DNA of 64,000 nucleotides, taken from Chlorokybus atmophyticus. Taxonomy: Eukaryota; Plantae; Mesostigma and Chlorokybus algae. The notes under the pieces are model-generated. The model was not told the DNA's origin. It saw nothing but the letters and a program-made list of their open reading frames with translations, and searched no databases. Each line of letters starts with the position of its first letter. The first letter of the stretch is position 1. Made by a program: the position numbers and the translations under genes. The stretch is from assembly GCA_009103225.1 (NCBI GenBank), contig RHPI01002402.1, forward strand, positions 124,001 through 188,000, in the 5' to 3' direction. This document shows, piece by piece, positions 43,353-63,800 of the stretch.

Positions 43353-43434
43353 GTTCAGATGGCCGAGCGGTCTAAGGCGCCAGATTAAGGCTCTGGTCTC
43401 TTCGGAGGCGTGGGTTCAAATCCCACTCTGGACA
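43353..43434 (+). tRNA. trnL-AAG: tRNA-Leu (anticodon AAG)
   Basis: Acceptor stem GTTCAGA/TCTGGAC, A-box TGGCCGAGCGG, anticodon arm CCAGA-TTAAGGC-TCTGG, long variable arm, B-box GGTTCAAATCC, discriminator A. Confidence 0.96.
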
Positions 43435-43444
43435 GATGGAATTG

Positions 43445-43484: not shown

Positions 43485-43766
43485 TGTCCCCCTTTTTTCA
43501 CATGTGACTGGTTTTTCGTTTTCCACATGCAGTATCTCACCCCCACTGCCCGGGATTGTGTGAAAAAAGGGGGACAACCGGGAAGACAGACATCCACAAC
43601 GTGAGTTCGGAGCGACATGCATGTGGCGCTACGGTATTTCCATCACCCTCGCCGGGGATCGTGTGCAATAAGGGGGGACAACCTTGAAATCAATTACCGG
43701 GGTACAAGGCAGAATAAGAAAGGATGGCATTACCGTAGCGCCACATACATTGCGCCCCGAGCTCAC
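43485..43766. repeat. Two adjacent inverted-repeat pairs (MITE or DNA-transposon-like relic)
   Basis: Perfect 18-bp IR at 43485-43502 / 43559-43576 (tgtcccccttttttcaca). An imperfect 36-bp IR at 43601-43636 / 43731-43766 has a perfect 16-bp core. A degenerate third copy of the first motif lies at 43662-43680. Confidence 0.65.
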
Positions 43767-43994
43767 ACTTTTAGGTGAATATTTACTTTCAATGTTTCAT
43801 GTTTAGGTCTCCAGTTCCATGGCATGCATAGACTTTAACTAAAATGGCCTGCAATGTATAAATTAAATATTTGGTAAATTTGAGACACGTTGTATTATTT
43901 ATAACAGACGAAATATACGTGTCTTTACGTAGACTACTTATTACTATTATCGATAGCATTTAACAAAATAATCCATTTGAGTATAAATAGCATA

Positions 43995-44360
43995 TGTCGC
44001 ACTAGCAGCCCTCGGCACGCCCTTCCTCCTCGCACAGCCCCTCAAGCAGCAGTTTGCCTCATCGACATCCGGATCCACCGATCCGCTCGAGGCCGCCGCT
44101 ATCACCAAGTACTCCGGACTACCCTTCAAAGCGCGCCGCGTGCCAACCCTGGCCTCATCCAATCCGCCGCCGCCATCTATAGCGGCGGGCCGCGTCGACT
44201 GCCAGCGGCGACCTCCGCCAATCAGGACCCAGGGTCTATGGCAGTGCCGACAACCACAAAAGGGACTCCCCGCAGGACGCGTCGGCGGGAAGTCGCAAGT
44301 GAATGGACTGGAGCCGAAGCGGCGGTGACACTGCCGGAAACTGACCAGCTGACCACGTAG
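43995..44360 (+). repeat. Terminal repeat A1 (366 bp)
   Basis: Direct repeat of 60239-60604, with about 9 substitutions by eye. Confidence 0.95.
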
Positions 44361-44363
44361 AAG

Positions 44364-44372
44364 TAGTGCGAC
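44364..44372 (+). promoter_or_regulatory. Putative self-priming primer-binding site
   Basis: TAGTGCGAC is the reverse complement of GTCGCACTA at the start of repeat A (43996-44004). It lies 3 nt after A1, where a PBS is expected, and no TGG-type tRNA PBS is present. Confidence 0.6.
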
Positions 44373-45031
44373 TAGGTTGTGTTGCTTAGCACCAGTTGTG
44401 GGTTGTGTGTGTTACTAGTGGGCACCCTGCCTTAGCAGACCACTGCCCAGACTTGACTTTGCTAAAACTCTTCAAAGGTGTAAGTGTTTGTTATTGTGGT
44501 TGTGGTCACCGCGTCTGCTGCCTGCATACCGCATCTCCTCATTGCTGCCACATTGCTCGCGCACAGCGGTCAGCCAATGTTGTCGCAACTGTGCCTGCTC
44601 GTACATGTGTGCCTGGAGCTTGCAGCGTGTAAACTCATTTCACTTAGCTAAAACATACCACGAGTGCATAGTGTGACTGCTGTGTGCATTTCTCAAGCCA
44701 CCCCCTATCTGGAGCTTGTTGACTTGCGACTTCCCCCACAGCATCTAGTCACCACCCAGAGTGTGCCCTCGCTGGGTTTTGCCTCGTTCGTGCTTTTCTC
44801 GCGTGTAGGTGCATGCGTCTCAGGAGTCAAGAACTTGGCTGGGGAGCGCGACGAGCTAGGACGTTCAGAGGGTCGAGGCGGGCTAACCCCATCACTCATG
44901 TGACGTATACAGCCCCGAAATCTTCCCCTGAACCATCTGAGGAGACGAGCACCATCGACGGCGCGTCGCCTCCTTCCTCAGACAATTGTCTCCCTTCCTA
45001 CAGCGACTCTAGTTTCGACAGCGAAGGAGAC

Positions 45032-46500
45032 ATGGCAACTACATCGGTCAACCGCAGCAACCCTGTCGCCAACCGCAGCAACACCAGGAAGCTGGTCTTC
45101 ACCGGTGCTCCCAACTCCCTCTCCCTGCGGGAATGGGTTAATCGCTTCCGCGCCATTGTCCTCCCAGTCAAGCTTCGGGCAGGCCCCAACTGGGACGATG
45201 ACCAGAAGTTCATTGTGGCGGCAGAATACCTTGACGACGTCGCCGCAGCTGTCTGGCAAGAAGTTGCCACCGCTCATGACCTCCTCGAGCGTCTTCTACG
45301 GTCCAACCCCGGGCTTGGGCCATTCATCTCCACCGCTGAAAGCCTTGGCGCTCCTCGAGCGTCACTCCTGGGCTCACGCATCCCGCTACGCGTGGCGCAA
45401 GCAGGATTGGCAGTTCAAGGCGAGGTGGCCGATACCAGCAGTAGTGCTTCCGGCACCACCTACCAACACCACCTTCGTGGCACCCGCGGCGCTGGAGCAG
45501 GAGTCTAACGAGGACTACGCTCGACGCTGCACTGAAGCAGTCACCGCTTTCGCCACCGCCCTGGTGGCATCCATGTCAGCTGCCACTACCCCTCCGGTAC
45601 GTCACCCACCTGCTGGAGAAGATGACCGTACGTCCCTTCCACGCTTGTCACCGTGGGCAGACTTGGTTCAACGCCTCAACCAGCGCTTCCCTTCTTACAC
45701 TGAGAAGGCACAGGAACTGGTTCGCCTTAGGAGGAAACCCAAGGAGACCCCTGTTCAGATGTACGAACGCGTTGTCAAGCTGGTGGACGAGACCACTATC
45801 GACGGCCAAACCCTGGTAAACCCCCAGCACCTGGCCATCGTTTACGTGGAGAACCTTGACTCCACTCTCTAAGAACACGTCAAGGCCGATCTTCGTGGCA
45901 CCTCCCGCTATACCTTGTACCAGGCCTACATGCGCGCTGTGCACTGGCAGGAGGAGATCGTACAGGTCCAGGCAGCCTTGGAGATCAGCGGCCTCTCGCG
46001 CCGCAGCAGCGTGCCCACGCCGTCACCTACCACCGTCACGGCCAGGCACCTCCGCATTGCTCACGCAGTAACCCGTCCTGGTGAGAGCACCTCTGTGGTC
46101 TGCCACCGATGCAGCAAAGAAGGCCACATCATGCGGGAGTGCCCTGTACAGCGCACCGATGTCCGCTGCACCTACTGCGACATGGACGGTCACGTCGAAT
46201 CCGTCTGCTACACCCTTCACCCCGAGCTGAAGTCCGCCTTGAGGCCTGCACCTTTCATCTCACCCCTTGGCGGCAACACCGACAGCAGGGGCAAAGGCAA
46301 GGGTAGGACCAACCCACCCGTCCACGGCAAGCTAGGAGCCAAGACCGCTGCCAAAGTCGCCTCTGCCATCCGCGCACCTGACCTACAGGGGGAAAAGAAC
46401 AACCTTCAGGCTCAGATCGAGGACCTTCGCAGCCGCCGCGATGAACTGGAAGACCTCCTCAACTGCGACTACCTCGCCGCGTGCTCAGCCCGAACTCACA
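45032..46500 (+). pseudogene. gag: Gypsy gag with two CCHC zinc knuckles (frameshift and stop codon)
   Basis: ATG 45032; FTGAPNSLSLREWVNRF..AEYLDDVAAAVW; RLRRKPKETPVQMYERV; in-frame TAA at 45870; CHRCSKEGHIMREC and CTYCDMDGHVESVC at 46101-46210. Confidence 0.85.
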
Positions 46501-46699
46501 GGATCGTTGGCACCGCTACCCGTCCAGGTCGCCGGTCCACTCCTCCACCCAATCGGTCACCCTCGCCTCCCGCGCAACGGCAACGTGTCGGCTCCACTTC
46601 ACAAGCAACCACGTCTCGGGCACCCACTCTCTCTGACTTGGAGCGAGGTCTGGCCTGGCAACGCTCGACGCTGGGCACAGCTGCGGGCTCGTTGGCAAA

Positions 46700-49600
46700 C
46701 ACTCGCAAGACGCCTTCCACTGCCGTCCGGCAACATGCCACCGCAACCTCAGGAGCTGCCACGGCATGTCGGAGAGCTGGTGTCCCACACCACCGCCTTT
46801 GTGCACCAGCTTGCCGCCGCCTACTCCAATGCCACCTCAACACCCCCAGAGGCAGAGGCCCTGCGGGAATGGATTCGGACGCACCTTGCAGCACTGGTGG
46901 ACGATGTGCTCGCCGAAGCAGCACGCTTTGAGGACTACCAGGACCATCCGCCTCTGCTTGACTTGTGAAAGGCGGCAGCTTCCAAATCACCTTCCGCCTT
47001 TCACACTGGCCAGCGCCTTTTACTGGATGTTGTCGTTGACAGACAACATCATCGCGGGACGACGCACCTTGGCGGAGTCCAACTGGTCACGACAGCTGGG
47101 CCGGCTTCGCATATCTCTTGCTCGACTGTCCATCTCCTGGCTCCCCAACAATGCATTTCTGCAACCCCTTCGTCCCATCCATTTACGTGTCTTCCCTCGT
47201 ACTCACACCGAAGGCGGTGCACTTCACCGCTGGGACCGCATGGTGGCACGCTACGAGGACACCTGGGCCACTCTCCTTCTGGAACGCCAGCTGCTAGGAG
47301 CCGGCGCAGCTGCCCCCACTGCACACGCTCGGCGTCAGGAGTTCGTGCGAAGGCTTAATCACCGCCTACAGGAAGCACCCTGGCCGTTGGTTTGGGCCTC
47401 TCCAGACAATGTGGAACGCTGGGCCTTGCAAGCTTTGAACGACACTCAAGGGGACCCATTGCTGGCCGCACCCCTTGACTCAGTTCTGCCGGATGACGAC
47501 CATGCTGGCCTCACTTAGCTCACCACCACCCTCGTGCGTGAGTTGGGACAACAGGTGCACTTGGTTCCCGTTAATGCCCGGTTGTCTGCCCGACAGCAAC
47601 GACGTCTTGCCGCGCTGAGCAACCCCGAACACCGCGTCGTTCGCGACGTCCTCGAAGGGATGCTGGTTCGTCAGGACAATGCCTTCGAACCTCCTGGACG
47701 TCTTCACCTTCTTGCTCGGCGGTGGCTGATCGCTCTTGCCACGCGAGACACACTAGACGAGTTCATCCTCGATGCACCCACTGCTCAATTACCCGCAGCC
47801 TTCGCCTTGCCCCCACTTGAGGAAGATCCTCGCCCTAGCGCACAGGCTCGCGCCGCTGCACAGCACCCAGAGGCCCTGTTGCCGCCATCGCCTCCCCGCG
47901 AGGCTGATATACCCCCTGTCCTGCCACCTGCCGACGCTACGCTTCTACAACAAATCATGGGCAACCTGCCCAGCAACGCCCCGGAGCTCGAGTACTACCG
48001 CATGCAAATGCATCAGTTGTCAGCCATCTGGCAGAACGTTCACGATGGTACGCAGCCTCCCATGCGCTACGTACGCGAACGCGCTCGGGCCCGAGCATGC
48101 ATACGGCTGCACCGCCTCAGCCAGCTTCGCTCACCCTTAGGCAACGCTTCGGAGCGCTTTCCAGGTGAAAGTTCCTGGCTCGTTGCGCCTGAGCCTGGCT
48201 TCGAGTTACCGCACGCACTGATGACGCCGCTTCAACCCACGCCCGCACCTATCGAGGACGCTGCGCGCACCCGGCAGTCCTCCATGGTTTACCTGCCATC
48301 CCCTTTAGAGGCCCCCGTTTGGCGGCCCCCACACCACATGAGGAAGATCTCCATGAAGCCCTGCTGTGCGCTGCACGCGCAGCTCACCATCGACAGTATC
48401 CTGCTATCCTGTACCCTGCTGTGGCGGCCGAAGACTGGGCCACACATGAAGTCCGCATCCGACGTTCCCTGTGGCTGCTTCGCCAGCGCCAGCTGCTGCA
48501 GGGCGCCCCTGCACGCGACTCAACAGAGCGCGACGCGCAGCATGCCCTGCGCCTCTCCCTCGCACCCCGTGTTGGGGGGGGGGGGGGGGCAGACCAGTCC
48601 AACTTCGGGTGACTCGCCTTGGCGCAGGGGAGGCATCTTCGTCGCTTTTGCCATCCTCGGCTCAGGCGCNGCCATCCTCGGCTCAGGCGCAGTACTGGAG
48701 CATCACGCCCGAGCACACCGGCCAGCGTCAGTTGGAAACTCGTAGACGCTTAGAGCGGCTCTAGTACCACCTGGCACGTCATGAAGGGCCTCGGGGTGAT
48801 CTGGTGGCGTTGGGTCGCGGCATTGAGGAGGCCGAGTTAGATATTCTCCTACAATGGTTGGCCACACGAAACCACTCTTTGGACCCCCGGCTGTTCGTCA
48901 ACCCAAAAGCATGGTGCGAGAATCTGGCTACCGTCAGGCTACCCCGGTTGCTAGAACGGGCGCTGAACTACTGGGACTCATTGCCACCCACTATGCCAGT
49001 CTACGAGCGGAGCTCTGCGACTACACGACACCTTACTGACGTGCACAGGCTCTTTCACTGGGAGAACCGGCGCGATGAGGAGCAGATACGGAACTCCTAT
49101 CAGCTTCACCTGGACGATGCAGAGACCAGGGACCTCCGCCTACAGGTGGAGACAGAGCTTCTCGCAGGCACCGGCATACCCGACCAAGTCCTGCAGGATA
49201 GCCATTATGTCCTCCCTCTCACCAATGCAGAGCTGGACTTGGTAGCAGCGCACGTACGGCTGCTTCCTATTCTGCCTGTGGCCACCTACGGGGACCGCCG
49301 GGCTTATCATTGGGAGCGCGCTATCACTGCGAAAGCTCTTCGCCTGGCAATGGACGTGGCATCAAGATACCGTCCACCACTAGAGAACGACTCAGGTCAG
49401 CCCAGCTCTGCACCGCGATCACCACCACCCTCAGACGAGCAGGGTGGGTCACGCATCGTGTCGGTTGCCCTAACTCAGGTGCCTTCCGCCGACATCTTGC
49501 CCATCGCCCCCACGGGACAGTCCCCCGTGAACCTTTACGGGCCACCACGCATGTTGGACCGTCTACGTTGTCGACCTAACATCGGCATGGTCAACAACCG
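46700..49600 (+). pseudogene. Long disrupted coding region of unknown function between gag and protease
   Basis: Successive + strand ORF segments (46766-47518, 47534-48745, 48804-49742) with Leu/Ala/Arg/Trp-rich, helical-looking sequence, broken by stops, a poly-G run and an N. No recognisable motif. Confidence 0.6.
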
Positions 49601-49619
49601 CCTCGGCCATGTCACCTTT

Positions 49620-50010
49620 GCCAACCGCCTGGACCCCACGACATGTGCTGTTCGACACCGGGGCACACCCTGTCATCTTGGGCAGACGCGCCGCAAAACG
49701 CTTAGACATCCGCACTCAGGACCTGAACCCTGCGACCCATGAGATTCGCACCGCTCAAGGGTCGTGGAGAGCACCAGAGGGGAAACCCGCCAGCGCGTCA
49801 ACCTGCGCTTTACTGGACTACAGCGCGAACAAACCACCGTCCTTGGCGTCTTCAGCCTGGTAACCGACGGCGAAATGTTTGACGTACTCATTGGCATGGA
49901 GGCACTGTTTCCCATCGGCACCACCATCGACACCTGGACAAAGCAAGCCCTTTTTCGCCCGCGCTGGTACCAAGACGATGGCACTCCGGCAGCCATCCCA
50001 CTGCACCTTT
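49620..50010 (+). pseudogene. Retropepsin aspartic protease (frameshifted)
   Basis: VLFDTGAHPVILG (Asp codon 49654), then after a frameshift FDVLIGMEAL..IDTW. Confidence 0.85.
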
Positions 50011-50202
50011 CCAACTCCTCCCAGTACACCTTCTCTACCGTCCCCATCAGAAGTACCAACTCCACCCTGCGTTACGGCCTCCACCTCTCCGAGCACAAGG
50101 GAGTCGTACCTTAGGCTACACACCCATACTTCCTGACAGGGTCAAGCTGCCTTCGGCATCACGCTCCTGTCATTTGTAAGTGTAGGCTAAGAAAAGGGGG
50201 GG

Positions 50203-50604
50203 TGTTGAGAAGCAAGCATGCAAGTGAAGAGGGCAAGCAATAACACACAGGAGAAGGCAACACACGTCCCGATTTATTACCAACAGACCGCGGGGTTATA
50301 TACCCGCCAGTCAGTACACAGTTTGTACACACTGCTGGTCTACATGCAACAGCGTCCGATATACTGAACTATATCCTACGCTGTGAGATGTGCCACGTAG
50401 CTAACTTGATAAGCTTTGTAACAAGCTATGCCACGTCCTATAAGACTGAGTATCCTAGGAGATATGACGATTCTCCTAGGACCCTTCTCTGCAGTCCGCG
50501 CCAGGACCTTCATGTCCGGAGTCTTCGAGGTCCTCCCATCGAGGTCCCTTCTCTTCTCTCTTGTATGCAGGGCAGGCTGACCGGATGTAGGAATATCTTC
50601 AACA
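50203..50604 (-). repeat. Copia 3' LTR (402 bp)
   Basis: tgttgagaag...cttcaaca; matches 54839-54940. Confidence 0.93.
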
Positions 50605-50649
50605 CTCCCACGCGGGCAGCTTGGCCTCCTACGCTTGGTCTTCTTTCAC

Positions 50650-53600
50650 CTAAGCACATATGCCGAGTCCCTTGCAACATGCCTTGAACTTTAGCGGTGA
50701 CAGTGGCTTCGTCATGAAGTCCGCGAGCATGTCTTCCGTATTGCAATATTGGAACTCAACCTCCTTGCGTGTGACTCTGTCTTGCACAAAGTGATGCATG
50801 ACATCAATGTGCTTTGTACTTGTCGAGGCAATGGGGTGCTTCAGCAACTTGATGGCGCCTTGGTTGTCGCAGTTGATCGTGATACACGCCATCGGGTGCT
50901 CCAAATTTGCCATCAGCTTGCGAAGCCATAACGCCTCCTTCACTGCAGCCGATGCTGCCATGTACTCCGCTTCCGAAGTAGATGCAGCTGTTGTGGGTTG
51001 CAGCCTACTGTTCCAGCTCACCACGCCTCCATTCAACTTGAAGACGTACGCCGTGGTGGACCTCCTGCTATCGAGGTCACCTGCAAAGTCTGCGTCGCAA
51101 TAGCCCTCCATCTCTGTGCTTCCGCAACCAAACTTGATGCCAACACTTGCGCTTCCAGCCACGTAGCGCAATACTCCCTTCGCTGCACGCCAGTGCTCCA
51201 TGCTTGGTGCAGACATGTAGCGCGCAAGCACTCCAACTGCATGTGCGATGTCGGGTCTTGTGCACACTGCTAGGTAGAGCATACTCCCAACAAGCTCACT
51301 ATAGGGATACTGAGCCTTGTCGAGTACTTCCTCATCTTTCGCTTTGACGAGGTTGGTGCCGAGTGCCAATGGAGTAGACTTGGTCTTTAATTTGTTGAGT
51401 CCGAACTTGGTGACAAGTTGCTTCACCATCTGCTCTTGGCTGATCTTGATTGTGCGTGCTGCTCTGTCACGCTCTATCACCATGCCAAGAAATAACTTGA
51501 CCTCTCCAAGGTCGCGTACTGCGAATGCTTGCTGCAATCCGTGCTTCGTTTGCTTCAGGTCTTCAACTTGCTTGGCCGTGACGATGATGTCGTCCACATA
51601 CACGAGCAAGTAAACCTTCTTCTCTTCATGGATGAAGAGCCCCGGATCCGCTGAGGATGCTTTGTAGCCGAGTTTCTCCAACTCTTTCGTGAGGCGATTG
51701 TGCCACACACGTGGTGCTTGTCGCAGCCCATACAAAGCCTTGATCAACTTGCAAGCCATGCCTGGCTCCCCTTCTGCGTAGCCTGGTGGTTGCTTAGTGT
51801 AGATCGCTTCCTCCAGCTCTCCGTAAAGGAAAGCAGTCTTTACATCAAGGTGGTGACACTCGAGGTCTTCAGCAGCAACCATGGCGATTTATGTGCGGAA
51901 GGTTGCATGCTTACTTGCAGGTGCAAACACTTCATTGAAATCCACACCTTCTTGTTGCAAAAATCCCTTTGCCACCAACCTTGCCTTGTAGCGCTCGATG
52001 TTGCCTTGACCATCACGCTTCACCTTGAACACCCACTTGACCGGAATGGGCTTCACACCTTGCGGGGGCTTCTCCAACACCCATGTGTTGTTGGCATGGA
52101 GTGATGCAATCTCATCATCCATAGCTCGCTGCCATTGTTCTGCATCTGGTGCTCGCAATGCCTCCTCGTAGGTGCTTGGTTCTTCACTCTCGTCATTGTG
52201 CACACTAGCGATGTGTGCCTTGTAGAAGTCAGGTGCTTGTCTTTCCCTCACTGGGTAGCGTCGAGCTTGCTCCTGCTGCTTCTGCTTCTCGTCTGCTACA
52301 GATGAGCCCTGCTCTTTATTGATGACTGATGCCTCGCCTTCAACCTCTTCTCTGCTTGAAAGCTCTTCAGGTTGTGCTTTGTCATCTTCATCTTGAGGGT
52401 AGAAACCTTCTTCAGCTTCAACTTGTGATGAGCCTTCGTGGAACACGACTTCTCTGCTCACCACAATCTTGCGCGTGTCCTCCAGTAGGACCTTGTACGC
52501 CTTTGAGCCTGGTTCGTAGCCAACGAAGATGCCCTTCTTGCTGACCGGCTCCAACTTGTGTCGCAATTGACTTGGCACAAGTGCATATGCCACACATCCG
52601 AACACACGCATGCCACTCACATCTGGCGCTTCACCGTAAAAGAGCTCCCACGGAGTCTTTTGCTCAGAGCTTATCGGTGAACGGTTGCGGATGTAGTTGG
52701 CAGTGAGAACGGCCTCTTTCCACAGACTGTCCTCCAACTTGGTGTCATTGAGCATGGCTCGAACACGCTCCAACAACGTTCGGTTGAGACGTTCAGCTGC
52801 TCCATTCTGCTGCGGAGTGTATGGTGCTGTTGTCTCATGCCGTATGCCTTTGCTGGCGAAGAACTCTTTGAGCTGGGCGTTGATGTACTCCCCTCCTCGA
52901 TCACTTCTCATTGCTTTCGTCTTCTTGCCCGATTGAATCTCGAGCAATGCAATGACTGTACGCACAGCTCCCGCGACTTCTGACTTTTGAATCAAAGGGA
53001 AGACGATGGAAAGCTTGCTGTAGTCGTCGAGGAATGTTGCAAAGTACCTTACCCCTCCTTTCGCCACAATGCGCATAGGCCCGCAAACGTCCATGTGCAC
53101 AAGCTCGCAGGGATGTTTGCTACTTGAAGAAGATGATGAGAACGGCATGCGATGCTGCTTGGCCAACACACAGGGTTCACAGAGCGTAGTTGAAGACGCT
53201 TGAAAATCTTCCTTGCTCCCAGTAATGCCCTTCACCATGTCTTCAGCGACCAGGCGTGTGAGGTTGCTGTAGCCCAAATGCCCGAACCTTTGATGCCAAA
53301 GCTCAACCGTCTCCTTCTCCTTCACAATCATGGCCTTGCTGCCATGAGTCTGCTCCACAATGTAGAGCCCTCCTCGTTGGGTGCCGACCATGTACTCGAC
53401 CCCATCCATGCATACGGAGCAGCGTCCCTCCCGGATCACTATCTCAGCTCCCACGCGCTTAGCAACTCTCACAGAAAACAAGCTTGCAGCAGCTCCAGGT
53501 ACGTGCAATACTTCACGCAGTACCACCTCTCTCTCACCATCACCAATCTTGCATTGAAGCCTCACTTCACCAACTCCTATTGCTTCCAACTCGTGACCAC

Positions 53601-54531
53601 TAAAGCCTTCCACCTTCCTTGTGGTTGACATCTTCCTGTAGTTCTCCATCACCTCCTTGTGCGGTGTGAGATGCTGGTCACAGCCTGAGTCAATTGCCCA
53701 TAAAGTTGTATCAAACTTCCTTGAGGCAGTAAATGCAACACCCTTTTTTTTGCGTTGAGCGTTGCTACTGGTGCCTGCTTCAGAATGCTCTCGTTGGCGC
53801 TTACGACAATCCTTTGAGATATGTCCTTTAATACCACAATAGTGGCATGTGAGATTCTCGAACCTTGAGTTGCTGCCTTTCGCCTTGTTCTTATCTTCAT
53901 AGTTGCTTCATTTCTTGTATTCGTCTCGTGTGCAGAAGGCCACAGAGTCCACTTGCTCTTCCTTCTTTGAGACGCGTTGCTCCACAGTGAGCAACTTGGG
54001 TAGCACATCGTCTAGGGTTAGCTCCGATGACGATGTCTCGAGCAGAGTAGCGACAACTTCGTACTCTAATGGCAGTCCTGCAACAATCGGCAATACGACC
54101 TCCGTCTCTTCCATCTTGTGGCCGACGTTCATGAGGTCCGCCCACAGCTCTCTCGCACGTGCAACATACTTTGTGACCGGCTCGGCCGTCTCTTTATGAA
54201 GCGCGCTTAGCTGCTTGCGTATTTGTATCTTTCTGGGGTTGTTGTTGGCTTGAAATACGGCTGCAAGCTTCTCCCAAGCTTGTCTGCCATCTTCACATGC
54301 TGTGAGCATGGGAAAGTGATGTGGCTTACAGTTAAGCACCATCAAGGAATGTGCTTCAATTGAGTGTTCAAGCCAGATGCTTTCTTCTCCTGCTCTTGGT
54401 GCAGATGCCTTCAGGTCAACATACTTCCACATCTTCTTGTGGATAAGTAGTGCCTTCATTTCTACGCACCAAGTGCTGTAGATGTTTGTGTCCAGCTTTG
54501 TGATCAGCCCTTTATCGTAGCTTACCTCCAT
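50650..54531 (-). pseudogene. Copia gag-pol polyprotein with two in-frame stops
   Basis: One reading frame interrupted by TGA (53908-53910) and TAA (51889-51891). Motifs: CHYCGIKGHISKDC, WAIDSGC, WHQRFGH..CEPC, HMDVCG/SDRGGEY/AERLNR, YKARLVAKGF, YVDD, YCDADFA, and KHID..HH. Confidence 0.93.
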
Positions 54532-54822
54532 CTTTGCCGCGCCTGCTTTCTTCTTGCAGTTAGCACTTGAGACTTGCTTTGATAATCTTCACTTGTTGTG
54601 ACTTGAGTGACTTTGTTGACTTCAGTAACTTTAATCTACACTTCACTCTTGAGTGACTTCAATGACTTCGGTCTTGAATGACTTCGGTCTTCACTTCACT
54701 TTTCAGCGCCTTCAATCTTCTCTTCGCTCTTCAGTCTTGAGTGACTTCGATCTTCACTTCAATGCACCTTGTCACTTTTCTTCACTTCGCTTTCTTTCTC
54801 TTTCTCACACTCTTCACGCGTA

Positions 54823-54838
54823 GTGTGGGCCCATAACC
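54823..54838 (-). promoter_or_regulatory. Copia PBS of the half-tRNA-iMet type
   Basis: The minus strand reads GGTTATGGGCCCAC directly after the LTR CA. This matches the internal tRNAi-Met-complementary PBS used by Drosophila copia and related elements. Confidence 0.8.
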
Positions 54839-54940
54839 TGTTGAGAAGCAAGCACGCAAGTGAAGAGGGCAAGCAATGACACGCAGGAGAAGGCAACACA
54901 CGTCCCGATTTATTACCAACATACCGCGGGGTTATATACC

Positions 54941-55350
54941 NNNNNNNNNNNNNNNNNNNNNNNNNNNNNNNNNNNNNNNNNNNNNNNNNNNNNNNNNNNN
55001 NNNNNNNNNNNNNNNNNNNNNNNNNNNNNNNNNNNNNNNNNNNNNNNNNNNNNNNNNNNNNNNNNNNNNNNNNNNNNNNNNNNNNNNNNNNNNNNNNNNN
55101 NNNNNNNNNNNNNNNNNNNNNNNNNNNNNNNNNNNNNNNNNNNNNNNNNNNNNNNNNNNNNNNNNNNNNNNNNNNNNNNNNNNNNNNNNNNNNNNNNNNN
55201 NNNNNNNNNNNNNNNNNNNNNNNNNNNNNNNNNNNNNNNNNNNNNNNNNNNNNNNNNNNNNNNNNNNNNNNNNNNNNNNNNNNNNNNNNNNNNNNNNNNN
55301 NNNNNNNNNNNNNNNNNNNNNNNNNNNNNNNNNNNNNNNNNNNNNNNNNN
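54941..55350. other. Assembly gap (N run) covering most of the copia 5' LTR
   Basis: N characters. Confidence 1.
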
Positions 55351-55373
55351 CCACCCACCCCTTCTCTTTGCAG

Positions 55374-55605
55374 GGCTCCCTCCCCCTCCTCTCCTACCTC
55401 CTCTCCCGCGGCTCCTCCCCCTCCCTCCGCGACTCCTCGGGCCTCTCCCCCCTCCACTTTGCGGCGGCGGGGGGCCAGGTCGGCGCGATCGACGCCCTCG
55501 TGATCGCGGTCGGCGCGGGCGGGGAGAAGGAGGGACTGATGGAGGCGAGGGATGAGATGGGGAGGACGGCCGTGCACGTGGCGGCGAGCGGGGGGTCATT
55601 CGCGC
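55374..55605 (+). pseudogene. Isolated ankyrin-repeat exon fragment
   Basis: After a pyrimidine-rich acceptor (ttctctttgcag): GSLPLLSYLLSRGSSPSLRDSSGLSPLHFAAAGGQVGAIDAL..EARDEMGRTAVHVAASGG, with two GxT/SPLH.AA motifs. Confidence 0.7.
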
Positions 55606-55974
55606 TTGTGGGTTTCCGTGGCTCAATCTGTCAGGGTTTGGGATGGGGGGGGGAGGGGGACACATTCGCTCTCAGTCTGGTGCCGAGATGGCACATCTGC
55701 ATTACGCCCCGATGGGGCCGTCATCGACAGCTTTAGCAGGAACTGCCCCTGCTCATCATCCAGGCAGTCCACGCCCTGAAGAGCGTGGCGAAACAACTTT
55801 TTCACCCAAGCAACCCTCGGAAGTTGCCAAACAACCTCCTGTTTATCGGCAACGCCTGGCCCGGAAGGTCGCTGAGCGCGTGGCCACCACCACGATGATC
55901 TCTCCGCCCGATCCCAGTAGCCGCTTGCGACAGCTGGACCTCTCCACTGTCCACTTTGCCACCCAGCGCTACAA

Positions 55975-56959
55975 GGATGGCATCACGGTCCTGGAGTTGT
56001 TTGGCGGCATCGGCAGTGGCCTCGCCGCCACCCTCAACGTTGGCGTACCAGTACGCAAGTACTTCTACTGCGACCCCGACCTGCATGCTCAAACAACTGT
56101 GTCTCACCACTTGGCACAGATGCGCAGTCGGGATCCGTTGCTGGATCCTCAGGCATCCGCCGGCAGCCTTCAAGCTCTACCACAGGACGTTCGCCTCATC
56201 AACAGCCAGCACCTGCAATCCCTCGGCTGCATAGACCTCGTCATTGCAGGCTGGGAATGCCAGGGTCACTCCCGAGCCGGTAAAGGTCTTGGTCTACAAG
56301 ACCCCCAATCTCAGCTCTTCTAGGAGCTAGTGCGTATCATCCGCACCCTCCAACAGCAACAGCCAGACCGGCCTCCCGCCTACATCATCAAAAACGTCTG
56401 CGCTCGCGACGACGCCAGGCGCAACGTCCGGGAGGACTATGCGCAGGTTTGCGCCGTCCTCGGCGACCCCATAGTCATTGATGCAGCAGCACATGGTTCC
56501 CGTGCACACCGCCTGCGCAGCAAATGGACCAACTTGGCCCGCACATCCGACCTGGCCGCTGCCCAGTCATTGTCCATCCGCCCGCCTAACCTGCTGGTTA
56601 AGGACATCCTAGTTGACGGAGCACTTCCGCAGCCTGTCACCCACGCCACCTACAAGACCTTCTATCAGTGCAACCGCGTAGGTTACCCCATGGCCGCGCT
56701 GCCCACGCTGGTGGCATACCCTGGGTCTCATTCCTTCCGCAACGCCAATACGGGGATGGTCTGGGACACCAACCTCCAGTGCTTACGCGAGCCCCTCGCC
56801 ACTGAACGCGAACTCGCCATGGGCTTCTGGCCTGGCGCGGTCACCTCGGCGCCGCGGCTCTCTGAACGCCACTGTTGCGCGCTGCTTGGACGCGCCATGG
56901 ACCAGAACAGTATGGTCTGGCTGCTGGAGCACTGCCTAGCGCTGCAACACAGCTACTGA
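55975..56959 (+). pseudogene. C5 cytosine DNA methyltransferase domain within gypsy pol (DNMT3-like motif spacing)
   Basis: Motif I VLELFGGIG, motif IV IAGWECQGHS (Cys codon 56258), motif VI IIKNV (E to K), motif VIII GSRAHRLRSKWTN, then ERELAMGF and motif X LLGRAMD. In-frame TAG at 56321-56323. Confidence 0.9.
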
Positions 56960-57129
56960 CCACACCCAGAGCCTGGGCCATCCGCTGGGGGGGGGGGGGG
57001 GGGGGNCATCAATCGCCGCCATGGCCGTGCACGGCACCAGCCTCCAGGAACTGGAGGAAGCCTTGGAGTCCAAGGCTTGGACATCCCGCACACTGACGAG
57101 CTTGAACCCAATGGCTGGCATATTGGATG

Positions 57130-58400
57130 TATGGCTTCAGGAGACACAGAGACGCATTTGAAGACCTTGTTGGATGACCACAGGCAGCAGTTCGCTTACT
57201 CCCTCAAGGACTTAGGACTCATTGAGGAGGCCTCACCCAGCACACAATATGCAGCCGCCACCGTCATGCCCCTGAAGAAGGACGAGCAAGGACAGTGGAC
57301 TCAACGCCGCATGTGTGGGGACTATCGGGACCTCAACACCCACACCGTACTCGACCGTTACCGCATGTACACTCCGGACGAAATCTTCGACAGTGTGGGT
57401 ACGTGCAGATACTTCTCTGTGCTGGACATGTGTTCAAGATTCCACCAGATCGGCATCCAGCCAGAAGACAAGTGTAAGACCTCCATTTGGGGCAACCGGA
57501 CCCTGTACCAATGGAAGGTCATGCCATTCGGACTAAAGAACGCCCCTGCAGTCTTCCAACGCGTAATGGACAGGTGTCTTCGCGGCCTGGACAACTCCAG
57601 GTGTTACATAGATGACATCCTCATCTTCAGCCACACTGCGAAGGCGCACCTCCAGCACATCAAGGAAGTACTACAGAGACTCAAGGAGTATGGGCTTACG
57701 GCCCATCCAGAGAAGTGTACCTTCTTCGCTGACAAGATCCCCTACCTCGGACACCTCATCGTCCCCAACGGGGTCATGGTGCAGCAGGCCAAGGTGGATG
57801 CTTTGCTGAAGGTTCCTCCTCCCACCGACCTCCCCCGGCTACGGGCCTTCCTAGGACTGGCCAACTACTACCGGCGGTTCGGGCTCAACTTCTAGAATTG
57901 CCAAGCCTCTCAACGACCTGCTGAAGATAGCTACAACGTGGAACTGGGGGGAAGCAGAACAGCAGGCTTTTGAGTCCCTCAAGAGTCACCTACAGTCTGC
58001 CCCCATCCTGGCTCGTTCCGACTACAACCAACCCTTCATCCTTCACACCGACTGGAGCAGGCTTGGGCTCGGTGCGGTGCTGTGCCAGAAGGGCATTAAG
58101 GGGAAGGAACAGGTCATTGCCTACGCCAGTCGTAGCAACAACGCGGCAGAATCCAACTACAGCAGCTATGAAGGCGAACAACTCGCGGCGGTCTGGGCAA
58201 TCCAGTTCGTCCGCCCATTCCTCTTTGGCCACCAGTTCGAGCTGGTCACAGACGACCAGCCTCTACAACGGCTTCTCACTAGCAGCAAACTCACCGGCAA
58301 ACATGCTTGCTGGGCTTTACTGTTGCAGGAATACAGCTTCATTATCACCCACAAGCCTGGCGCCTCAAACACCGATGCTGACGGACTGAGTCGCAACCCC
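57130..58400 (+). pseudogene. Gypsy reverse transcriptase + RNase H (internal deletion and frameshift)
   Basis: RMCGDYRDLN, FSVLDM..FHQI, MPFGLKNAPAVFQR, YIDD (57605-57616), YLGH, RAFLGLANYYRRF; RNase H ILHTDWS..LGAVL..IAYASR..YSSYEGE..AVWAI..LVTD..NTDADGLSR. Confidence 0.93.
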
Positions 58401-58599
58401 AACCCAGACACGGTCGACGCCACAGGAGCTCGCTATGACAGCGACCACCCCCGGCATCACGCTGCTTATTGTTGCCGCTGGCATCCGCGCAGAAGCACGC
58501 AACCCAGTACTGCGTGCAGCTTTGCCCCCTGTTGCCGAAGGGGACATCTGGAAGGACGCCCCCACTCTTCAGCTGGTACGCGGAGGCGCGTTAGCTTCA

Positions 58600-59830
58600 G
58601 GCCTCACCCATCAAGAGATCGATCGTGCTCAACACTGCGCCAAGAACTACAGCTGGGAAAACGGCATTCTGTGGAGACTGCTCGCTGCCAATCAGCGCAA
58701 GGAGGTCCCGCCCCCTGACCGTCGCGCTGCCATCATCGCCAACCTTCACCACCAGCTTGGACACTTCGGCATGAAGCGAACCACCAACATGGTGCGTAAC
58801 GACTACTGGTGGGACAGCCTGGCCCGCAACGTTGCTGATGTACTCCGACAATGTAAGTCTTGCGATCGCATTCGTGCTAGCTTCTCCCATCGTCACCCAC
58901 AGCTGCACCCACTCCCCATTATGGGCCTCGGCTACCGCTGGAGCATGGACCTTGCAGGCGAGCTGCCTCGCACACGTCGTGGCAACACCTACACACTGGT
59001 CGCCATCGAGCACTTCAGCAAGTGGGTTGAATTGGTACCCTTGCCTGACAAGTCCTCTGCTCAAGTGGCACGAGTGTTCCTGGACCACATCCTCAGCCGG
59101 TTTGGCGCCTGCGCCGAACTCCTCACTGACAACGGCACGGAGTTCCAGGGCGAGCTGGATGAGCTGCTTCATCGCGCCCTCATCGACCACCGCCACACCA
59201 GCCGTGACCATCCCCAGGCTGACGGCCTGGCTGAACGAATGGTACAGACTGTGAAGAAGGCACTGCAACGCGACTGCCTTACTTACAACCAGGCTGAGTG
59301 GGATGACTACCTGCCCTGGCTGTCCTTAGGTTACCGCTGCACGCGCCAAGCTGCTCTGCGCTCCTTCAGCCCATACTTCCTCATGTTCGGGAGGGAGCCA
59401 TTGCTGCCTTCCGCGTCCGTCACGACACCCAAGCTATGGAGGACATTGCCGACAACCCTACACGCATGCTGCAAGTACTGCAGACTCGCGCAGCCGTTTT
59501 GCGCGACAGTATCCCCATCGCTTTCGCCAACTTGAAGATCGCGCAGCAACGGGACACGCGTTGCTACGAACACGTGCGCAGCGGCGCCTACAAGCCACAG
59601 GAGCGCCGCTTTCGTGTCGGCGACTTCATCTACCGCAAGCAGCAGACCACTAACACCTTGGATCCTGCCAATTACGGCACCGTTTGGCGCGTGACGCAGG
59701 TACGCGCACTCGGCACTCTCACTTTGCGAAGCCCCACTGGCCGCACCTTGACAGACCACGTGGAGAACTGCTTCCCCTGTCATCTGCCGTACGTGGAGGG
59801 GCTGGGCAAACCGCGCCCACGCTTCCGCAT
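58600..59830 (+). pseudogene. Gypsy DDE integrase
   Basis: HHCC zinc finger (HHQLGHFG..CKSC). Catalytic D (SMDL 58948), D (TDNG 59128) and E (AERM 59233), the last two 35 codons apart. SPYFLMFGREP, then a frameshift into the C-terminal part. Confidence 0.93.
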
Positions 59831-59837
59831 TGCCCAT

Positions 59838-59990
59838 TGCACGGGGTGCTCCTCCCCGGACGCACCTCTAGAAGAATGCGACACCTGCTGGGAGTATTGG
59901 CACGCCGCCTGTAACCTTGGTGTCTCACCTTTGTCCTCGGACGCACCATCCACTTCCTCCAGCGCCAGCCCGTGGCATTGTCACAGGTGC
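59838..59990 (+). other. PHD finger at the integrase C-terminus
   Basis: CTGC..LEECDTC..WHAAC..PWHCHRC, a C4HC3 pattern; the ORF stops at 60044. Confidence 0.85.
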
Positions 59991-60022
59991 CAGGCTCATT
60001 GCGAGGACGCCGACGAACCGGC

Positions 60023-60032
60023 AAGGGGGGAG
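60023..60032 (+). promoter_or_regulatory. Polypurine tract
   Basis: AAGGGGGGAG immediately before repeat B1. Confidence 0.75.
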
Positions 60033-60236
60033 CTTGTTGAGTGAATAACAACTGCCTGCTGGCTATCCCATACTGCGCTGCTACCCGTAGTCTTCACCTC
60101 TATCTTGCTTGCTTGCCAGTCCTTTCCCCCACCCTTGTGTAGTACTGCGGAACGCTTCCAGCGTGCCCTTTTGCTCGTTTTCTGGTGTTGCCGCACTGCG
60201 AGTCGCACTCGGCCGTCGAGCCTGCCTTGCACGACA
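60033..60236 (+). repeat. Terminal repeat B1 (204 bp, ends CGACA)
   Basis: Direct repeat of 60605-60808, with roughly 8-10 differences by eye. Confidence 0.95.
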
Positions 60237-60238
60237 GC

Positions 60239-60604
60239 TGTCGCACTAGCAGCCCTCGGCACGCCCTTCCCCCTCGCACAGCCCCTCAAGCAGCAGTTTG
60301 CCTCATTGACATCCGGGTCCACCGATCCGCTCGAGGCAGCCGCTATCACCAAGTACTCCGGACTACCCTTCCAAGCGCGCCGCGTGCCAACCCTGGCCTC
60401 ATCCAATCCGCCGCCGCCATCTATAGCGGCGGGCCGCGTCGACTGCCAGCGGCGACCTCCGCCAATCAGGACCTCGGGTCTATGGCAGTGCCGACAACTA
60501 CAAAAGGGACTCCCCGCAGGACGCATCGGCGGGAAGTCGCAAGTGAATGGACTGGAGCCGAAGCGGCGGTGACACTGCCGGAAACTGACCAGCTGACCAC
60601 GTAG
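60239..60604 (+). repeat. Terminal repeat A2 (366 bp, starts TGTCG)
   Basis: Direct repeat of 43995-44360, separated from B1 by only GC. Confidence 0.95.
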
Positions 60605-60808
60605 CTTGTTGAGTGAGTAACAACTGCCTGCTGGCTATCCCATATTGCGCTGCTACCCGTAGTCTTCACCTCTACCTTGCTTGCTTGCCAGTCCTTTCCC
60701 CCACCCTTGTGTATTACTGCGGAACGCTTCCAGCGTGCCCTTTTGCTCGTTTTTTAGTGTTGCCGCACTGCGAGACGCACTCGGCCGTCGAGCCTGTCTT
60801 GCACGACA
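60605..60808 (+). repeat. Terminal repeat B2 (204 bp, right end of the element)
   Basis: Direct repeat of B1. Ends GCACGACA and is followed by the TSD CATA. Confidence 0.95.
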
Positions 60809-63800
60809 CATATACAAAAAATATATTTATTAAACTTTAGCGATGATGATTGAATCATTCATTACTATTCCTAAGTAGCTAATATGATACATCACTTATA
60901 CTATTGTTGCTATATACATATGTTTAATGAACATGAAGCAAAACCATACAATCCAGTCATATAATGTGTGGTGATTGGTAATTGAATCACATGCTAACAG
61001 CTGCTGGATGACTGCAAGATTGAAAGCTCTTACATACTACATGCTGAGTCAATGCACACTTCACTGCAATTCCATATGTGGCGGCGGCAGTGGATGGCTA
61101 ACTTCTCCCTTCCTCTCCCCCGCGGTGCTCTGCAGGTGCTTCTTTTGCTGCTTGCTGCTACCCCTTCCCCCTTCCTTCGGGCCACACTCCTCCTCCGGTC
61201 TATAGCTGGTGCACTTAGCTATAGCCGAGTGGGGCCCCCCATCAGGCCCCACCCCTTTGTTTTTGCCTTGCTTATGCTGGTTTATAAAGCTTTGCTGTCT
61301 TGTGCTGGCTTGCTTGACTGATTGAACCCAATCCATCTGTCGTTGTAACAAATCTGGTATGGATTGTCATGGGCTATTCTCATGGTAGCGCATTTGCTAC
61401 AGCCTAATGGTCGGAACCCCCTGATTGGTATCGAAAGCGTAACGTCGTGGGTTCGGCTCCCGTTGGGGGATAGAAACTCGGCCGTAATTTGGAGGGATCC
61501 ACAGGGAAATGAACGAAACATTCGGGCGACTTGCTCTAGGCCGAACGTGGGTTCGCAATCTGCGTCCGAGCTGAGATAACCTACGGCCGCGCGAAAGGCC
61601 CCGCCGCGATTGCAGGTCGCGTTGTTAGCCGGTGAGGGTGGCCGGTGCCAGACGGTCAGTCAATGGGTTTCCGACTGATTGGATCGGATGCACGCCACAA
61701 GGCCGCGGGCGGTCATGATCGCGGTGACGCAAGCTAGTGTAAGGGCCTAACAGAAAGGGAACTTGGCGGGTTTAATTGGGGAGGATTGTAACGCATTTAA
61801 TATAAATTGTCACAGACCTCACTCATTGTAGCGCTTTTGCTATCATAGCCTAGTGGTCAAAACCCCCCTTTGTTACAATTGTGTACTCTGCTCTTTGCCC
61901 AGAATTTTGGTCGACGCCGGGCCCGCACCTTCGGGGGGTGGTCTGCCCCCATCACCCGTGGCCGCAATTGGGGCGAGCCTCAAGGGCGGCCTCACGCTTT
62001 TGCATGGGGTTGTCTGCTTGCTTAAGCTACCTTGCTGTACCAAGGTTAATTGCTTGGTTGGTGTTGATTAATTGGCAAGGGCGACGGCCCAGCATTAGCG
62101 CACTTAGTGAGCATTAATGAACGGGATGGGGTGGACAATAACGAAAACGACCAAGTGGTAGGGTCGCAGCAGTTACAAGCCTCTGCTTCCGCTTCTCAAC
62201 GTACAAAGCATCCTTTCGGCACTCAAATAAACCCACTACAGTGCCAACTTGTCAGTTCTCCGTATAATCCGTGAAAAAGCATGCATGTGGTGTAACGGGA
62301 GCAATAATAGTAGGGCTATTATTGCTACTTAAATGACATATTCTGTGTAGATAAGTACATGTAAATGAATATTTATACCTCTTGTCTACGGTTCCTCGCT
62401 TATCAAAGCTTATTACATTTTATTATAGCCTTAATAAGTGTCAATGGGTGTAGAGCCGCATATTTAAGCATATATAGGGTCGCATATCATACATGCGACC
62501 CTATATATAGGCTTAAATGTGATCACTATAGCCAGATATTGCGATAGATACCTTATGATTAAATACCTTACCGTTGGATATCTGAGCTGCTATTGGCTCA
62601 CGCTAAAATTCTGACGGCTACCCTATCTATAGGGATGACACCTGATTGCGAGTCCGATAACCAGACACATATATGTGATACATCCTTGATATATAAGGTC
62701 TCATCAACTAATGAGACCTCAATTCAGTTCTCTGCCATCTGCAGCGTCATGCTGCCGGCGGCGTGACAGGCTTGTCATCGGCGGTGTGGGTATTGGGGTA
62801 GAGGATTGAAGGGACGGCCGCCTTATATAGGCGCCGTGGTTGTTACATGTGATGTTGGCTTCTGCATGGTTCTGTGACCAACTGCTAACCGCTGTGCTGG
62901 CTTCAGCTGCGCTGGCAGGAGATGTGCTTGCGCTGCTACAACACTGCATGTGACATGGATGCTGACATTGGTGGGAAAGCCTTTGTATAAGGTGCATTGC
63001 GCTGAATGCGATCATGGACCATCGTGGTCCGTTGAGTTGTGATCGCTTATGCATCCTGGCAAACAATGCGTGCAATCTGCAGCTTATTTGGTCCGACAAG
63101 AGGTGTTTACCACCCATGCATGCATTGGCTTGCTGCTGTCACAACCACCAATTCAGTGTGATGTCAACCACTCAGTGCCAGTCGATGCACCAATGAACAC
63201 TGCGGCACTATCGCTTATGCTAGGGACCGCGGCGACGTATAGTCCACCCGTAGCATCTAACCAGCACAGCCGTCTGCAGATGGCATGCACACTCCTGCGT
63301 GAGCATGCAGTATGCCCATGAAAGGATGCGGCCACATATGCACACATGTGCAAGCGTAAGGCAATTGTGCATGCAGACAGGCCATGCACACCCTAAACCG
63401 AACATACAAGTGGCATACACATACACCAACAGTGTATAAGACCACTACATGCACATACACATGCATGCACACTTACAAGTGTGCAAGGCTATTGGATGCA
63501 CAAACACATGCATGCACATTAAACAATACACAAGGGCCAGACCGGCTAGGCAGGGGTTATCTACAACAACAGGTAGTCAAGGAAGACCACTCACAACTCC
63601 ACCAGCAGTAGCAAGATGTGGGAGGCGCCTACTCTTCAGCGCAGGCGTCAACCTTAAGGTAAACCTCCAACCCTAACTAGAACACTTAGAAACGCCTCAC
63701 ACATGAGGGTAAGGAAGGCCCCTTGAACAGCTAAGCCAAGGACCCCATATACACAGCAAGTGAGCACCAAGCTAAGTCCAATTAAACCCCCCAACACCAT

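Follow-up and report, generated by a model that had tools for sequence, protein, structure and literature searches.

The window analysed here, a stretch of 64,000 nucleotides from the alga Chlorokybus atmophyticus (contig RHPI01002402.1, positions 124,001 to 188,000), contains at 43995-60808, on the plus strand, a retrotransposon whose proteins are those of the Ty3/gypsy group and whose terminal repeats nevertheless follow the order known from DIRS elements, A1-body-B1-A2-B2. Its left end is a single A repeat (A1, 43995-44360) that starts with TGTCG, and its right end is made up of B1 (60031-60236), the dinucleotide GC, A2 (60239-60604) and B2 (60603-60808), with both B copies ending in CGACA and B2 sharing an AG with the end of A2. 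A1 and A2 align over 366 nt with 9 mismatches and 0 gaps (97.5% identity), B1 and B2 align over 206 nt with 8 mismatches (96.1% identity), and no further copy of A or B was found elsewhere in the 64-kb window. The two full direct long terminal repeats (LTRs) of a canonical gypsy element are thus absent, the left end being A alone and the right end B-GC-A-B, and the same is true of the relatives described below. The outer termini, TGTCG...CGACA, and hence of the TG..CA type, stand between two copies of CATA (43991-43994 and 60809-60812, both plus strand), so that the left border reads CATA-TGTCG and, by comparison of the flanks, the right border CGACA-CATA. The chance of such a 4/4 match in the window is 1/256, and target-site duplications (TSDs) of this kind recur in the relatives. 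Termini of the form TG..CA with a 4-5 bp TSD are a Ty3/gypsy trait, shared by the window element and its relatives, whereas DIRS elements insert without any TSD. A first-pass annotation of the window, made from its letters, had already described this A..BAB layout with its TGTCG/CGACA ends and 4-bp CATA duplication, and the description was confirmed; its positions for the four repeats were also borne out, the B starts that it gave (60033 and 60605) being equivalent to 60031 and 60603 because the AG at the A/B join can be assigned to either repeat.

Two features of the right end bear directly on how this layout could have come about. At the B1/A2 boundary the letters CGACA, GC and TGTCG form a perfect 12-bp palindrome (60232-60243, to which no strand applies), which is the proposed internal attachment (att) site of the element. 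Immediately 5' of B1 lies ggcaaggggggag, the region of the polypurine tract (PPT; ggcaagggggg(ag), 60019-60030, plus strand), and B, the distal U3, starts exactly at this tract, in keeping with the annotated order of PPT before B. A PPT directly 5' of the 3' repeat is again a Ty3/gypsy feature, and in every related family examined the G-run abuts the start of B. A, in turn, corresponds to the proximal U3, R and part of the U5 of the LTR as reverse transcription defines it.

Between these ends the element encodes, in order, gag, protease (PR), then a nested copia insertion and an assembly gap, ankyrin repeats (Ank), a DNA methyltransferase (DNMT), reverse transcriptase (RT), RNase H (RH), integrase (INT) and a C-terminal region, all on the plus strand. 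The pol order PR-RT-RH-INT with a Ty3/gypsy-type RT is that of Ty3/gypsy elements, and both the RT (57080-57892) and the INT (58519-59415) found their best solved match in Ty3 (4ol8, 3.6e-39, and 7q5b, 1.3e-21, respectively), which upholds the earlier assignment to a Ty3/gypsy-type retroelement; RNase H (57897-58442) was placed by domain search and homologue alignment. The integrase consists of an HHCC zinc-binding domain and a D,D35E core, and within an uninterrupted piece (58390-59532) it has retained H120, H125, C155, C158, D187, D247 and E282, all of which are invariant among its ten closest homologues. DIRS elements carry a tyrosine recombinase and no DDE integrase; here the DDE integrase is present, and no tyrosine recombinase was detectable in any open reading frame (ORF) piece, in a ~2.9 kb stretch of the element that lacks homologues, or in the intact-looking relatives (no Phage_integrase match), as the first reading of the letters had also found. 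Its proteins, termini and TSD thus place the element in Ty3/gypsy, yet as a member without two full LTRs, and its likeness to elements of the DIRS order is confined to the arrangement of the repeats.

The gag region (45675-46229), with a CCHC zinc knuckle at ~46098-46145 (PF00098), aligns to the gag of the polyprotein of a related element (L002), and the aspartic protease region (49557-50021) was recognised, without any Pfam match, from its alignment with the protease part of several related polyproteins. The ~2.9 kb ORF-like stretch between them (46637-49556) is extra in comparison with related elements and has no homologue in Pfam, protein databases or the PDB; a 408-aa piece of it (47519-48742) gave no homologue within the length range searched, and the neighbouring pieces had no PDB match either. 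The gag-PR interval, ~2.9 kb in the window, is only ~0.8 kb in the aligned L002. The ankyrin repeats (55353-55733; Ank_4, 1.2e-10) follow right after the gap, 5' of the DNMT and in a different frame from it; none occur at that place in the Pfam-scanned related polyproteins, and they could be a captured host fragment. The C5 cytosine DNMT domain (55976-56953), a weak PF00145 match that is 42-48% identical to the corresponding segment in 20 related polyproteins, is broken by a stop at 56321-56323, and the integrase C-terminal region (59451-59996; 36% identity to L002 residues 884-1061) corresponds to the PHD-finger region of the relatives, although Pfam detected no PHD finger there in the window copy. 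The "intact-looking integrase" of the first-pass annotation stands for the catalytic piece, but not for the pol region around it, which is interrupted by two in-frame stops (56321-56323 and 56957-56959) and at least three changes of frame (between RT and RH, RH and INT, and INT and the C-terminus). It is because of these two stops, these frame changes and the 2.5-4% divergence of the repeats that we call the copy dead: the window element is an old, degraded, inactive copy of a Viridiplantae Ty3/gypsy lineage with a DNA-methyltransferase domain and the domain order gag-PR-DNMT-RT-RH-INT(-PHD). The nearest proteins, ~50-60% identical, come from Haematococcus, Closterium, Marchantia, Calypogeia and metagenomes, and nothing closer than ~60% to the window integrase or DNMT was met in the searches made, which also returned no K. 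nitens sequence. A megablast comparison of the pol region with a plasmid collection gave no match.

Nor are the 16.8 kb a single retrotransposon, as had first been supposed. On the minus strand between 50.2 and 55.9 kb the GC content and strand bias shift and a full Ty1/copia set is found (gag, protease barrel, integrase, RVT_2), belonging to a nested Ty1/copia element (50203-54940, reaching to ~55.2 kb; gag 53908-54531, PR-INT-RT 50650-53652). Its LTR direct repeat, 50203-50304, is the same as 54839-54940, and the upstream LTR, which starts at 54839, runs into an assembly gap of Ns (54941-55350) that hides the rest of the copia LTR, the junction of copia with its host and some host sequence. 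Since the gap sits at that junction, continuity and frame across it cannot be established from the assembly; the host domains are colinear with their homologues on both sides of it (PR to the left, Ank and DNMT to the right), the terminal repeats are more than 4.6 kb away, and the matching TSDs argue that the two flanking halves belong to one insertion. Next to the upstream copia LTR (54826-54838) the minus strand reads GGTTATGGGCCCA, a primer-binding site (PBS) which we take to be complementary to the anticodon arm of initiator tRNA-Met, presumably for half-tRNA priming as in Drosophila copia and not by the usual 3'-end PBS. The other N positions in the window are a 334-N gap at 24118-24451 and single Ns at 48670, in the element's unmatched stretch, and at 57006, just 5' of the RT.

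Whether the repeat order is a trait of a family or an accident of one old copy was a question for the relatives. An integrase-profile scan of metagenome contigs produced 80 loci, mostly of one AT-rich, moss-associated family with the domain order PR-DNMT-RT-RH-INT-PHD. Whole elements of this family at eight loci were all A-body-B-NN-A-B (8/8; NN, two spacer nucleotides), and ~18 independent insertions, counted after removal of loci with shared flanks, end 3' in B-NN-A-B. Perfect 4-bp TSDs surround the TGTCATG...ACA termini of four moss copies (GGTC in L009, TGAC in L061, ACCT in L064 and ATCA in L068), and four more copies match at 3/4 positions. In the chromosome-level assembly of Marchantia polymorpha, a young copy (L087; AP019873.1, 6187-14824) has the same layout, with 3 mismatches in 291 nt between its A repeats and identical B repeats (99-100% overall), a B/A boundary of CGACA-GC-TGTCA, the TSD GAAG and 1 nt of filler at the A/B join. 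This copy is internally deleted, without RT, RNase H and most of the integrase, and was probably mobilised in trans, which suggests that the lineage was recently active in M. polymorpha. A further metagenome family (L084) has B-GC-A-B with B copies that are 99% identical, and a Closterium copy cut by its contig end (L083) carries CGACAGCTGTCG and has an A1 that starts exactly at TGTCG. The first-pass annotation had named two findings that would undo its reading, normal paired LTRs in other copies and a misassembly of the locus. Neither turned up: no copy with a full LTR at each end was seen among the relatives, and the layout stands both in the Marchantia chromosome and in the independent moss insertions. 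On the letters of the copies compared, the relatives thus show an A-body-B-A-B layout that is lineage-wide and not a one-off.

Across all loci examined, 869 kb of DNA, the palindrome motif [CT]GACA-NN-TGTC[AG] was counted 25 times where ~3 occurrences would be expected, almost all of them 0.2-2.4 kb downstream of INT. The palindrome is conserved across families with only 45-55% integrase identity, which strengthens the earlier proposal of an internal CA-NN-TG site. Its spacer reads GC in young copies, while old copies have AC or GT, as might be expected from deamination of a methylated CAG/CTG site. The palindrome is also present at L056, L046 and L001, where the available DNA contains no second A or B, and the Calypogeia locus (L086), riddled with other repeats, was kept out of the layout comparison. 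Three loci, L002 (1-17788), L085 (1-16317) and L078 (210-10284), are head-to-tail (LTR-body)n arrays with one B-NN-A between successive bodies, the L078 array opening with A beside the flank. Long-read contigs of low coverage account for two of the arrays, of which palindrome, PPT and PBS alone were used, and the arrays may represent tandems in the genome, multimers that integrated, or extrachromosomal concatemers. Another domain order, RT-RH-DNMT-INT-PHD, was also observed within the lineage (P0304, P0305, P0307, P0309 and P0311; L046 and L056), paralleling the domain shuffling reported for dinoflagellate DNMT-bearing DIRS elements.

If B starts where plus-strand synthesis is primed, it becomes important to know where minus-strand synthesis is primed, and here the statement that the PBS follows A was not confirmed for the window. 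No tRNA-type PBS was found in the window element. A weaker candidate on the plus strand, TAGTGCGAC (44364-44372), begins 4 nt past A and pairs over 9 nt with A nt 2-10 and also, offset by one base, with B nt 171-179; no 12-nt stretch with at least 11 pairs was found for it. The stronger match lies at +362, where the 14 nt of ACTTGCGACTTCCC (44722-44735, plus strand) are perfectly complementary to GGGAAGTCGCAAGT (44287-44300, plus strand), a length of pairing reached in 0/200 shuffles; the latter is the candidate RNA 5' end and self-primer, with an A-rich TATA-like stretch ~30 nt upstream. Directly before this PBS candidate, and overlapping it at its own last A, stands AGCTTGTTGA (44712-44721, the two together spanning 44712-44735), which is identical to the first 10 nt of B (60031-60040), and the region probably marks the true end of U5. 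In the relatives, the pairing is clearer. The 12 nt directly after A in the moss family (TCTAGAAAAACT) pair with A nt ~165-176, with 11-12 of 12 positions paired in 7/8 copies and TATAAAA upstream; L085 has a 16-nt PBS whose perfect complement lies inside A, with TATAAAT upstream; and in Marchantia the 11 nt directly after A pair with A nt 113-123, with a TATA-like motif upstream, the complementary site lying in each case ~30 nt downstream of the TATA or TATA-like motif. The lineage would therefore appear to prime by Tf1-type self-priming and not from a tRNA, clearly so in these relatives and as a candidate in the window, where 44722-44735 is put forward as the PBS by analogy. Such a self-priming pair places the predicted transcript start inside A, so that A1 of an integrated copy keeps a proximal promoter and transcription of the copy would remain possible. 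If 44722-44735 is the PBS, then the window A2 lacks ~350 nt of U5, and its shortening could stem from a resected join at the AG microhomology or from an internal deletion. A Tf1-like pairing of the 9 nt at the start of A was considered for the window and downgraded, given the relatives' starts ~30 nt past TATA inside A and the 14-nt pair. The ~9-10 nt before the predicted PBS repeat the first ~9-10 nt after the PPT both in the window (44712-44721 and 60031-60040) and in L085 (9627-9635 and 8504-8513), a short redundancy of the predicted linear cDNA that recalls the "r" repeat used by hepadnaviruses for circularisation and that is absent from the moss family.

If B does start at the plus-strand priming site and A does end at the minus-strand priming site, the A/B join is a junction between the end of U5 and the start of U3, one that would have to be made by joining the tips of the cDNA. 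Among 18 independent moss insertions, this join is complete in 6 (...CAAT followed by ATACATG), lacks 2 nt at an AT microhomology in 9, and is deleted in 3, with one to many filler bases; the AG overlap of the window element is of the type that is short at a 2-nt microhomology. These variants support, from the integrated copies compared, a join in the relatives that behaves like an end-joined LTR-LTR junction, being precise, shorter by 2 nt, or deleted and filled, and they speak for the earlier proposal that the window's A2/B2 junction was formed by end joining with AG microhomology. The join types, together with copies that have no A2-B2, are scattered over a star-like element tree and so are not markers of subfamilies. 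Copies of the latter kind make up about half of the moss family: ~15 independent insertions are A-body-B, with ...CGACA running straight into unrelated flank and no repeat, and one whole copy of this form has the perfect TSD CCAA. They could originate from a one-LTR circle, from synapsis of both LTR palindromes in linear cDNA, or from B-B annealing during repair. At the other end there is no such diversity, since all 12 independent 5' ends in the moss family pass from flank into A, with the mirror form A/B-NN-A in 0/12, and the extra A-B is always 3' (18:0; binomial probability < 1e-5).

We consider it probable, though by no means certain, that an ordinary DDE integrase cuts an internal palindromic att site and that the cDNA tips are joined, giving A-body-B-A-B. 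The anatomy, its conservation, the TSDs and the variability of the join are read directly from the copies, while we infer that it is the element's own integrase that cuts the palindrome, and likewise the order of events. Ordinary gypsy-type reverse transcription would yield a cDNA whose LTR is B-NN-A, in which B begins at the PPT while TATA box, transcription start and U5 all fall within A; as in Tf1, the RNA would prime through its own first 11-16 nt, paired with the PBS. The integrase would ignore the cDNA tips, which have no TG/CA, and would use instead the palindrome ...CGACA-NN-TGTCG... at the B/A boundary in the LTR, nicking after CA on both strands with a 2-nt stagger and so producing normal 3'-processed (recessed) ends. 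Strand transfer of these would give the 4-bp TSD, with loss of the NN of the opened LTR. An internal cut would also require the former tips of the cDNA, the end of U5 and the start of U3, to be joined to each other as the A2/B2 junction, so that the copy reads A-body-B-NN-A/B. Two orders of events can be envisaged. In one, the ends join into a 2-LTR or 1-LTR circle, which is opened afterwards. In the other, the 5' LTR, which in standard reverse transcription is the first to become double-stranded, is cut at its palindrome while the cDNA is still linear, both pieces are transferred, and host repair closes the far ends. In the latter case, end joining would produce B-A-B with a variable join, and single-strand annealing of the B copies would produce A-body-B. 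We slightly favour this cut-first order over the circle-first order, since it accounts for an extra A-B that occurs only on the 3' side. The circle-opening scheme of the first-pass annotation survives in its central element, an internal att site acting on end-joined cDNA, but it predicted neither the 3'-only position of A-B, nor the A-body-B copies, nor self-priming. The evidence supports joined cDNA ends as an obligatory step, and a simple circle model is incomplete.

Several points weigh against this account. A closed 2-LTR circle has two equivalent palindromes, and both forms should be expected equally, while the mirror form is missing from all 12 of the 5' ends; the cut-first order escapes this and in exchange implies a transient break in the chromosome. 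The 2-nt difference between joins could, taken alone, be slippage in ATAT, and A-body-B copies could equally have arisen later by recombination between B1 and B2. The tandem arrays of L002, L085 and L078 are not explained in detail by the favoured scheme. In the window itself, the homology of A1 and A2 ends 361 nt before the best PBS candidate, so that either A2 is truncated or the PBS is misassigned, and no second copy of the window's own family was retrieved, the relatives standing at ~45-55% integrase identity. Finally, the mechanism was read wholly from integrated copies and not from circles, linear cDNA or cleavage products. As for the wider proposition, that a green-plant gypsy lineage extending from chlorophytes and streptophyte algae to liverworts moved its att sites from the LTR tips to an internal palindrome, so that each integration needs the tips to be joined, by a circle or by host break repair, we find the case for it and the case against it evenly balanced.

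The most serious competitor is replication in the manner of DIRS or PAT-like elements, in which the whole A-body-B-A-B is transcribed, its ends are regenerated from the internal B-NN-A, and a closed circle is formed, with the A/B join inherited and the integrase replacing the tyrosine recombinase only at the last step. The layout is indeed identical to the split direct repeats of the Ngaro/PAT type, as de Mendoza et al. noted, most junctions are precise, and an extra A-B that is always 3' would be expected if it were copied from the parent. Against this, B starts exactly at a conserved PPT and A ends exactly at a self-priming PBS (moss, Marchantia and L085), borders that follow from reverse transcription of the LTR type and are not required by a DIRS scheme. 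B2 could not be copied by standard strand transfers, the junction variants, including those with deletions and filler, are scattered on the tree, and the circle of this scheme would still have two palindromes, leaving the asymmetry unexplained by itself. We regard it as unlikely, while giving it some weight.

Much less can be said for a layout that is secondary, that is, a normal LTR element rearranged after insertion by unequal recombination or by nested or tandem copies, or a scaffold that joined two copies across the gap. The assembly gap and nested copia within the element invite such a suspicion, as do the tandem arrays among related elements, but matching 4-bp TSDs surround A1 and B2 here and the corresponding ends in at least six relatives, the repeats are remote from the gap, and the same arrangement without any two-LTR copy in ~18 independent insertions and a chromosome-level assembly makes this explanation very improbable. 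Mobilisation in trans by the tyrosine recombinase of a true DIRS/Ngaro element, with the encoded integrase irrelevant to the layout, would account for split direct repeats that are otherwise known only from tyrosine-recombinase elements, and the window element does contain ~2.9 kb without recognisable function. The TG..CA termini and constant 4-bp TSDs are, however, signatures of a DDE integrase, the HHCC and DDE residues of the integrase are conserved across the lineage, and the apparently intact relatives L085, with its 2300-aa polyprotein, and L002 encode no recombinase, so that we scarcely credit this possibility. An internal att site cut by the element's integrase, with joining of the cDNA tips, is thus the reading that we retain.

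The surroundings of the insertion have less to offer. A tRNA-Leu(AAG) gene (43352-43435) lies 560 bp upstream of the element, but targeting to tRNA genes was rejected, as no tRNA gene was present at 15 related loci (up to 10 kb of flank on each side), and the proximity in the window is probably incidental. Between this gene and the element, the AT-rich flank contains an inverted repeat (43601-43766) with 44-nt arms, 84% complementary and 78 nt apart, which may be a small foldback or a sequence like a miniature inverted-repeat transposable element. When ten large ORFs outside the element were scanned, the only clear host-type domains were those of a minus-strand ORF with an NHL repeat (19833-20708) and a RING-H2 fragment (26231-26758), and the element has no evident consequence for neighbouring genes.

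The significance of the layout lies in the uncoupling of two features that have each been tied to one kind of enzyme: split direct repeats, the hallmark of tyrosine-recombinase elements, and terminal att sites, a constant of integrase elements. If the proposed mechanism is true, joined-end cDNA, elsewhere a "dead-end", would be an obligatory integration intermediate for a natural DDE integrase, and the lineage would represent a third route, beside those of canonical LTR and tyrosine-recombinase elements, by which reverse-transcribed DNA enters a chromosome. It would also follow that annotation pipelines built on paired LTRs miss or mis-split the lineage, half of whose copies have no terminal repeat, and that the origin of a DIRS-type layout is open to experiment, given a young copy in the model liverwort M. 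polymorpha.

The layout is not without precedent, and the first-pass claim that no gypsy family with it had been described proved mistaken. KnitGypsy-Dnmt3 of Klebsormidium nitens was described in 2018 as a Gypsy element whose pol includes a Dnmt3-like domain, and the legend to Fig. 4c of that paper notes that its repeats are DIRS-type and its domains Gypsy (de Mendoza et al. 2018, PMC5890265). Neither a mechanism, a TSD, an att site nor a mode of priming was given, and the family was reported from K. nitens only (PMC5890265); no published mechanism for DIRS-type repeats in gypsy elements was found in the literature searched. Compared by its published description, KnitGypsy-Dnmt3 is like the window element in having a Gypsy pol with a C5 methyltransferase domain and A-body-B-A-B repeats, the domain set being shared down to the DNMT. 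The window element differs from it in also having ankyrin repeats and ~2.9 kb of unmatched sequence. The 2018 paper thus recorded the layout, but neither how widely it occurs among plant lineages nor a likely mechanism for it.

Set beside other known systems, the window lineage shares something with each. Ngaro/PAT-like elements with DIRS order, and TOC1, resemble it in the arrangement of the terminal repeats and presumably in a joined-end intermediate. The enzyme that they encode is a tyrosine recombinase and their insertion leaves no TSD, whereas the window element has a DDE integrase, TG..CA ends and a 4-bp TSD, and the repeat borders of its lineage fall at PPT and PBS. With Tf1/sushi elements the lineage has in common the domain order RT-RH-INT, and the moss, L085 and Marchantia relatives also have, directly after U5, a PBS complementary to the 11-16 nt with which the predicted transcript begins. 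Where Tf1 carries att sites at the tips of two ordinary LTRs, the proposed att sites of the window lineage are internal, and for the window itself self-priming goes no further than a candidate pair. A parallel to the proposed cleavage comes from the retroviruses, since the integrases of prototype foamy virus and HIV-1 cleave palindromic LTR-LTR junctions (PMC1180852, PMC1905944, PMC4372172). As in our proposal, cleavage of the 2-LTR circle has a DDE integrase cutting a CA..TG palindrome in duplex DNA and regenerating integration-competent ends. In retroviruses, however, the palindrome arises from joined LTR tips and its cleavage is a side route, whereas in the lineage of the window element the palindrome, with its 2-bp spacer, is built into every LTR and its cleavage is apparently the only route.

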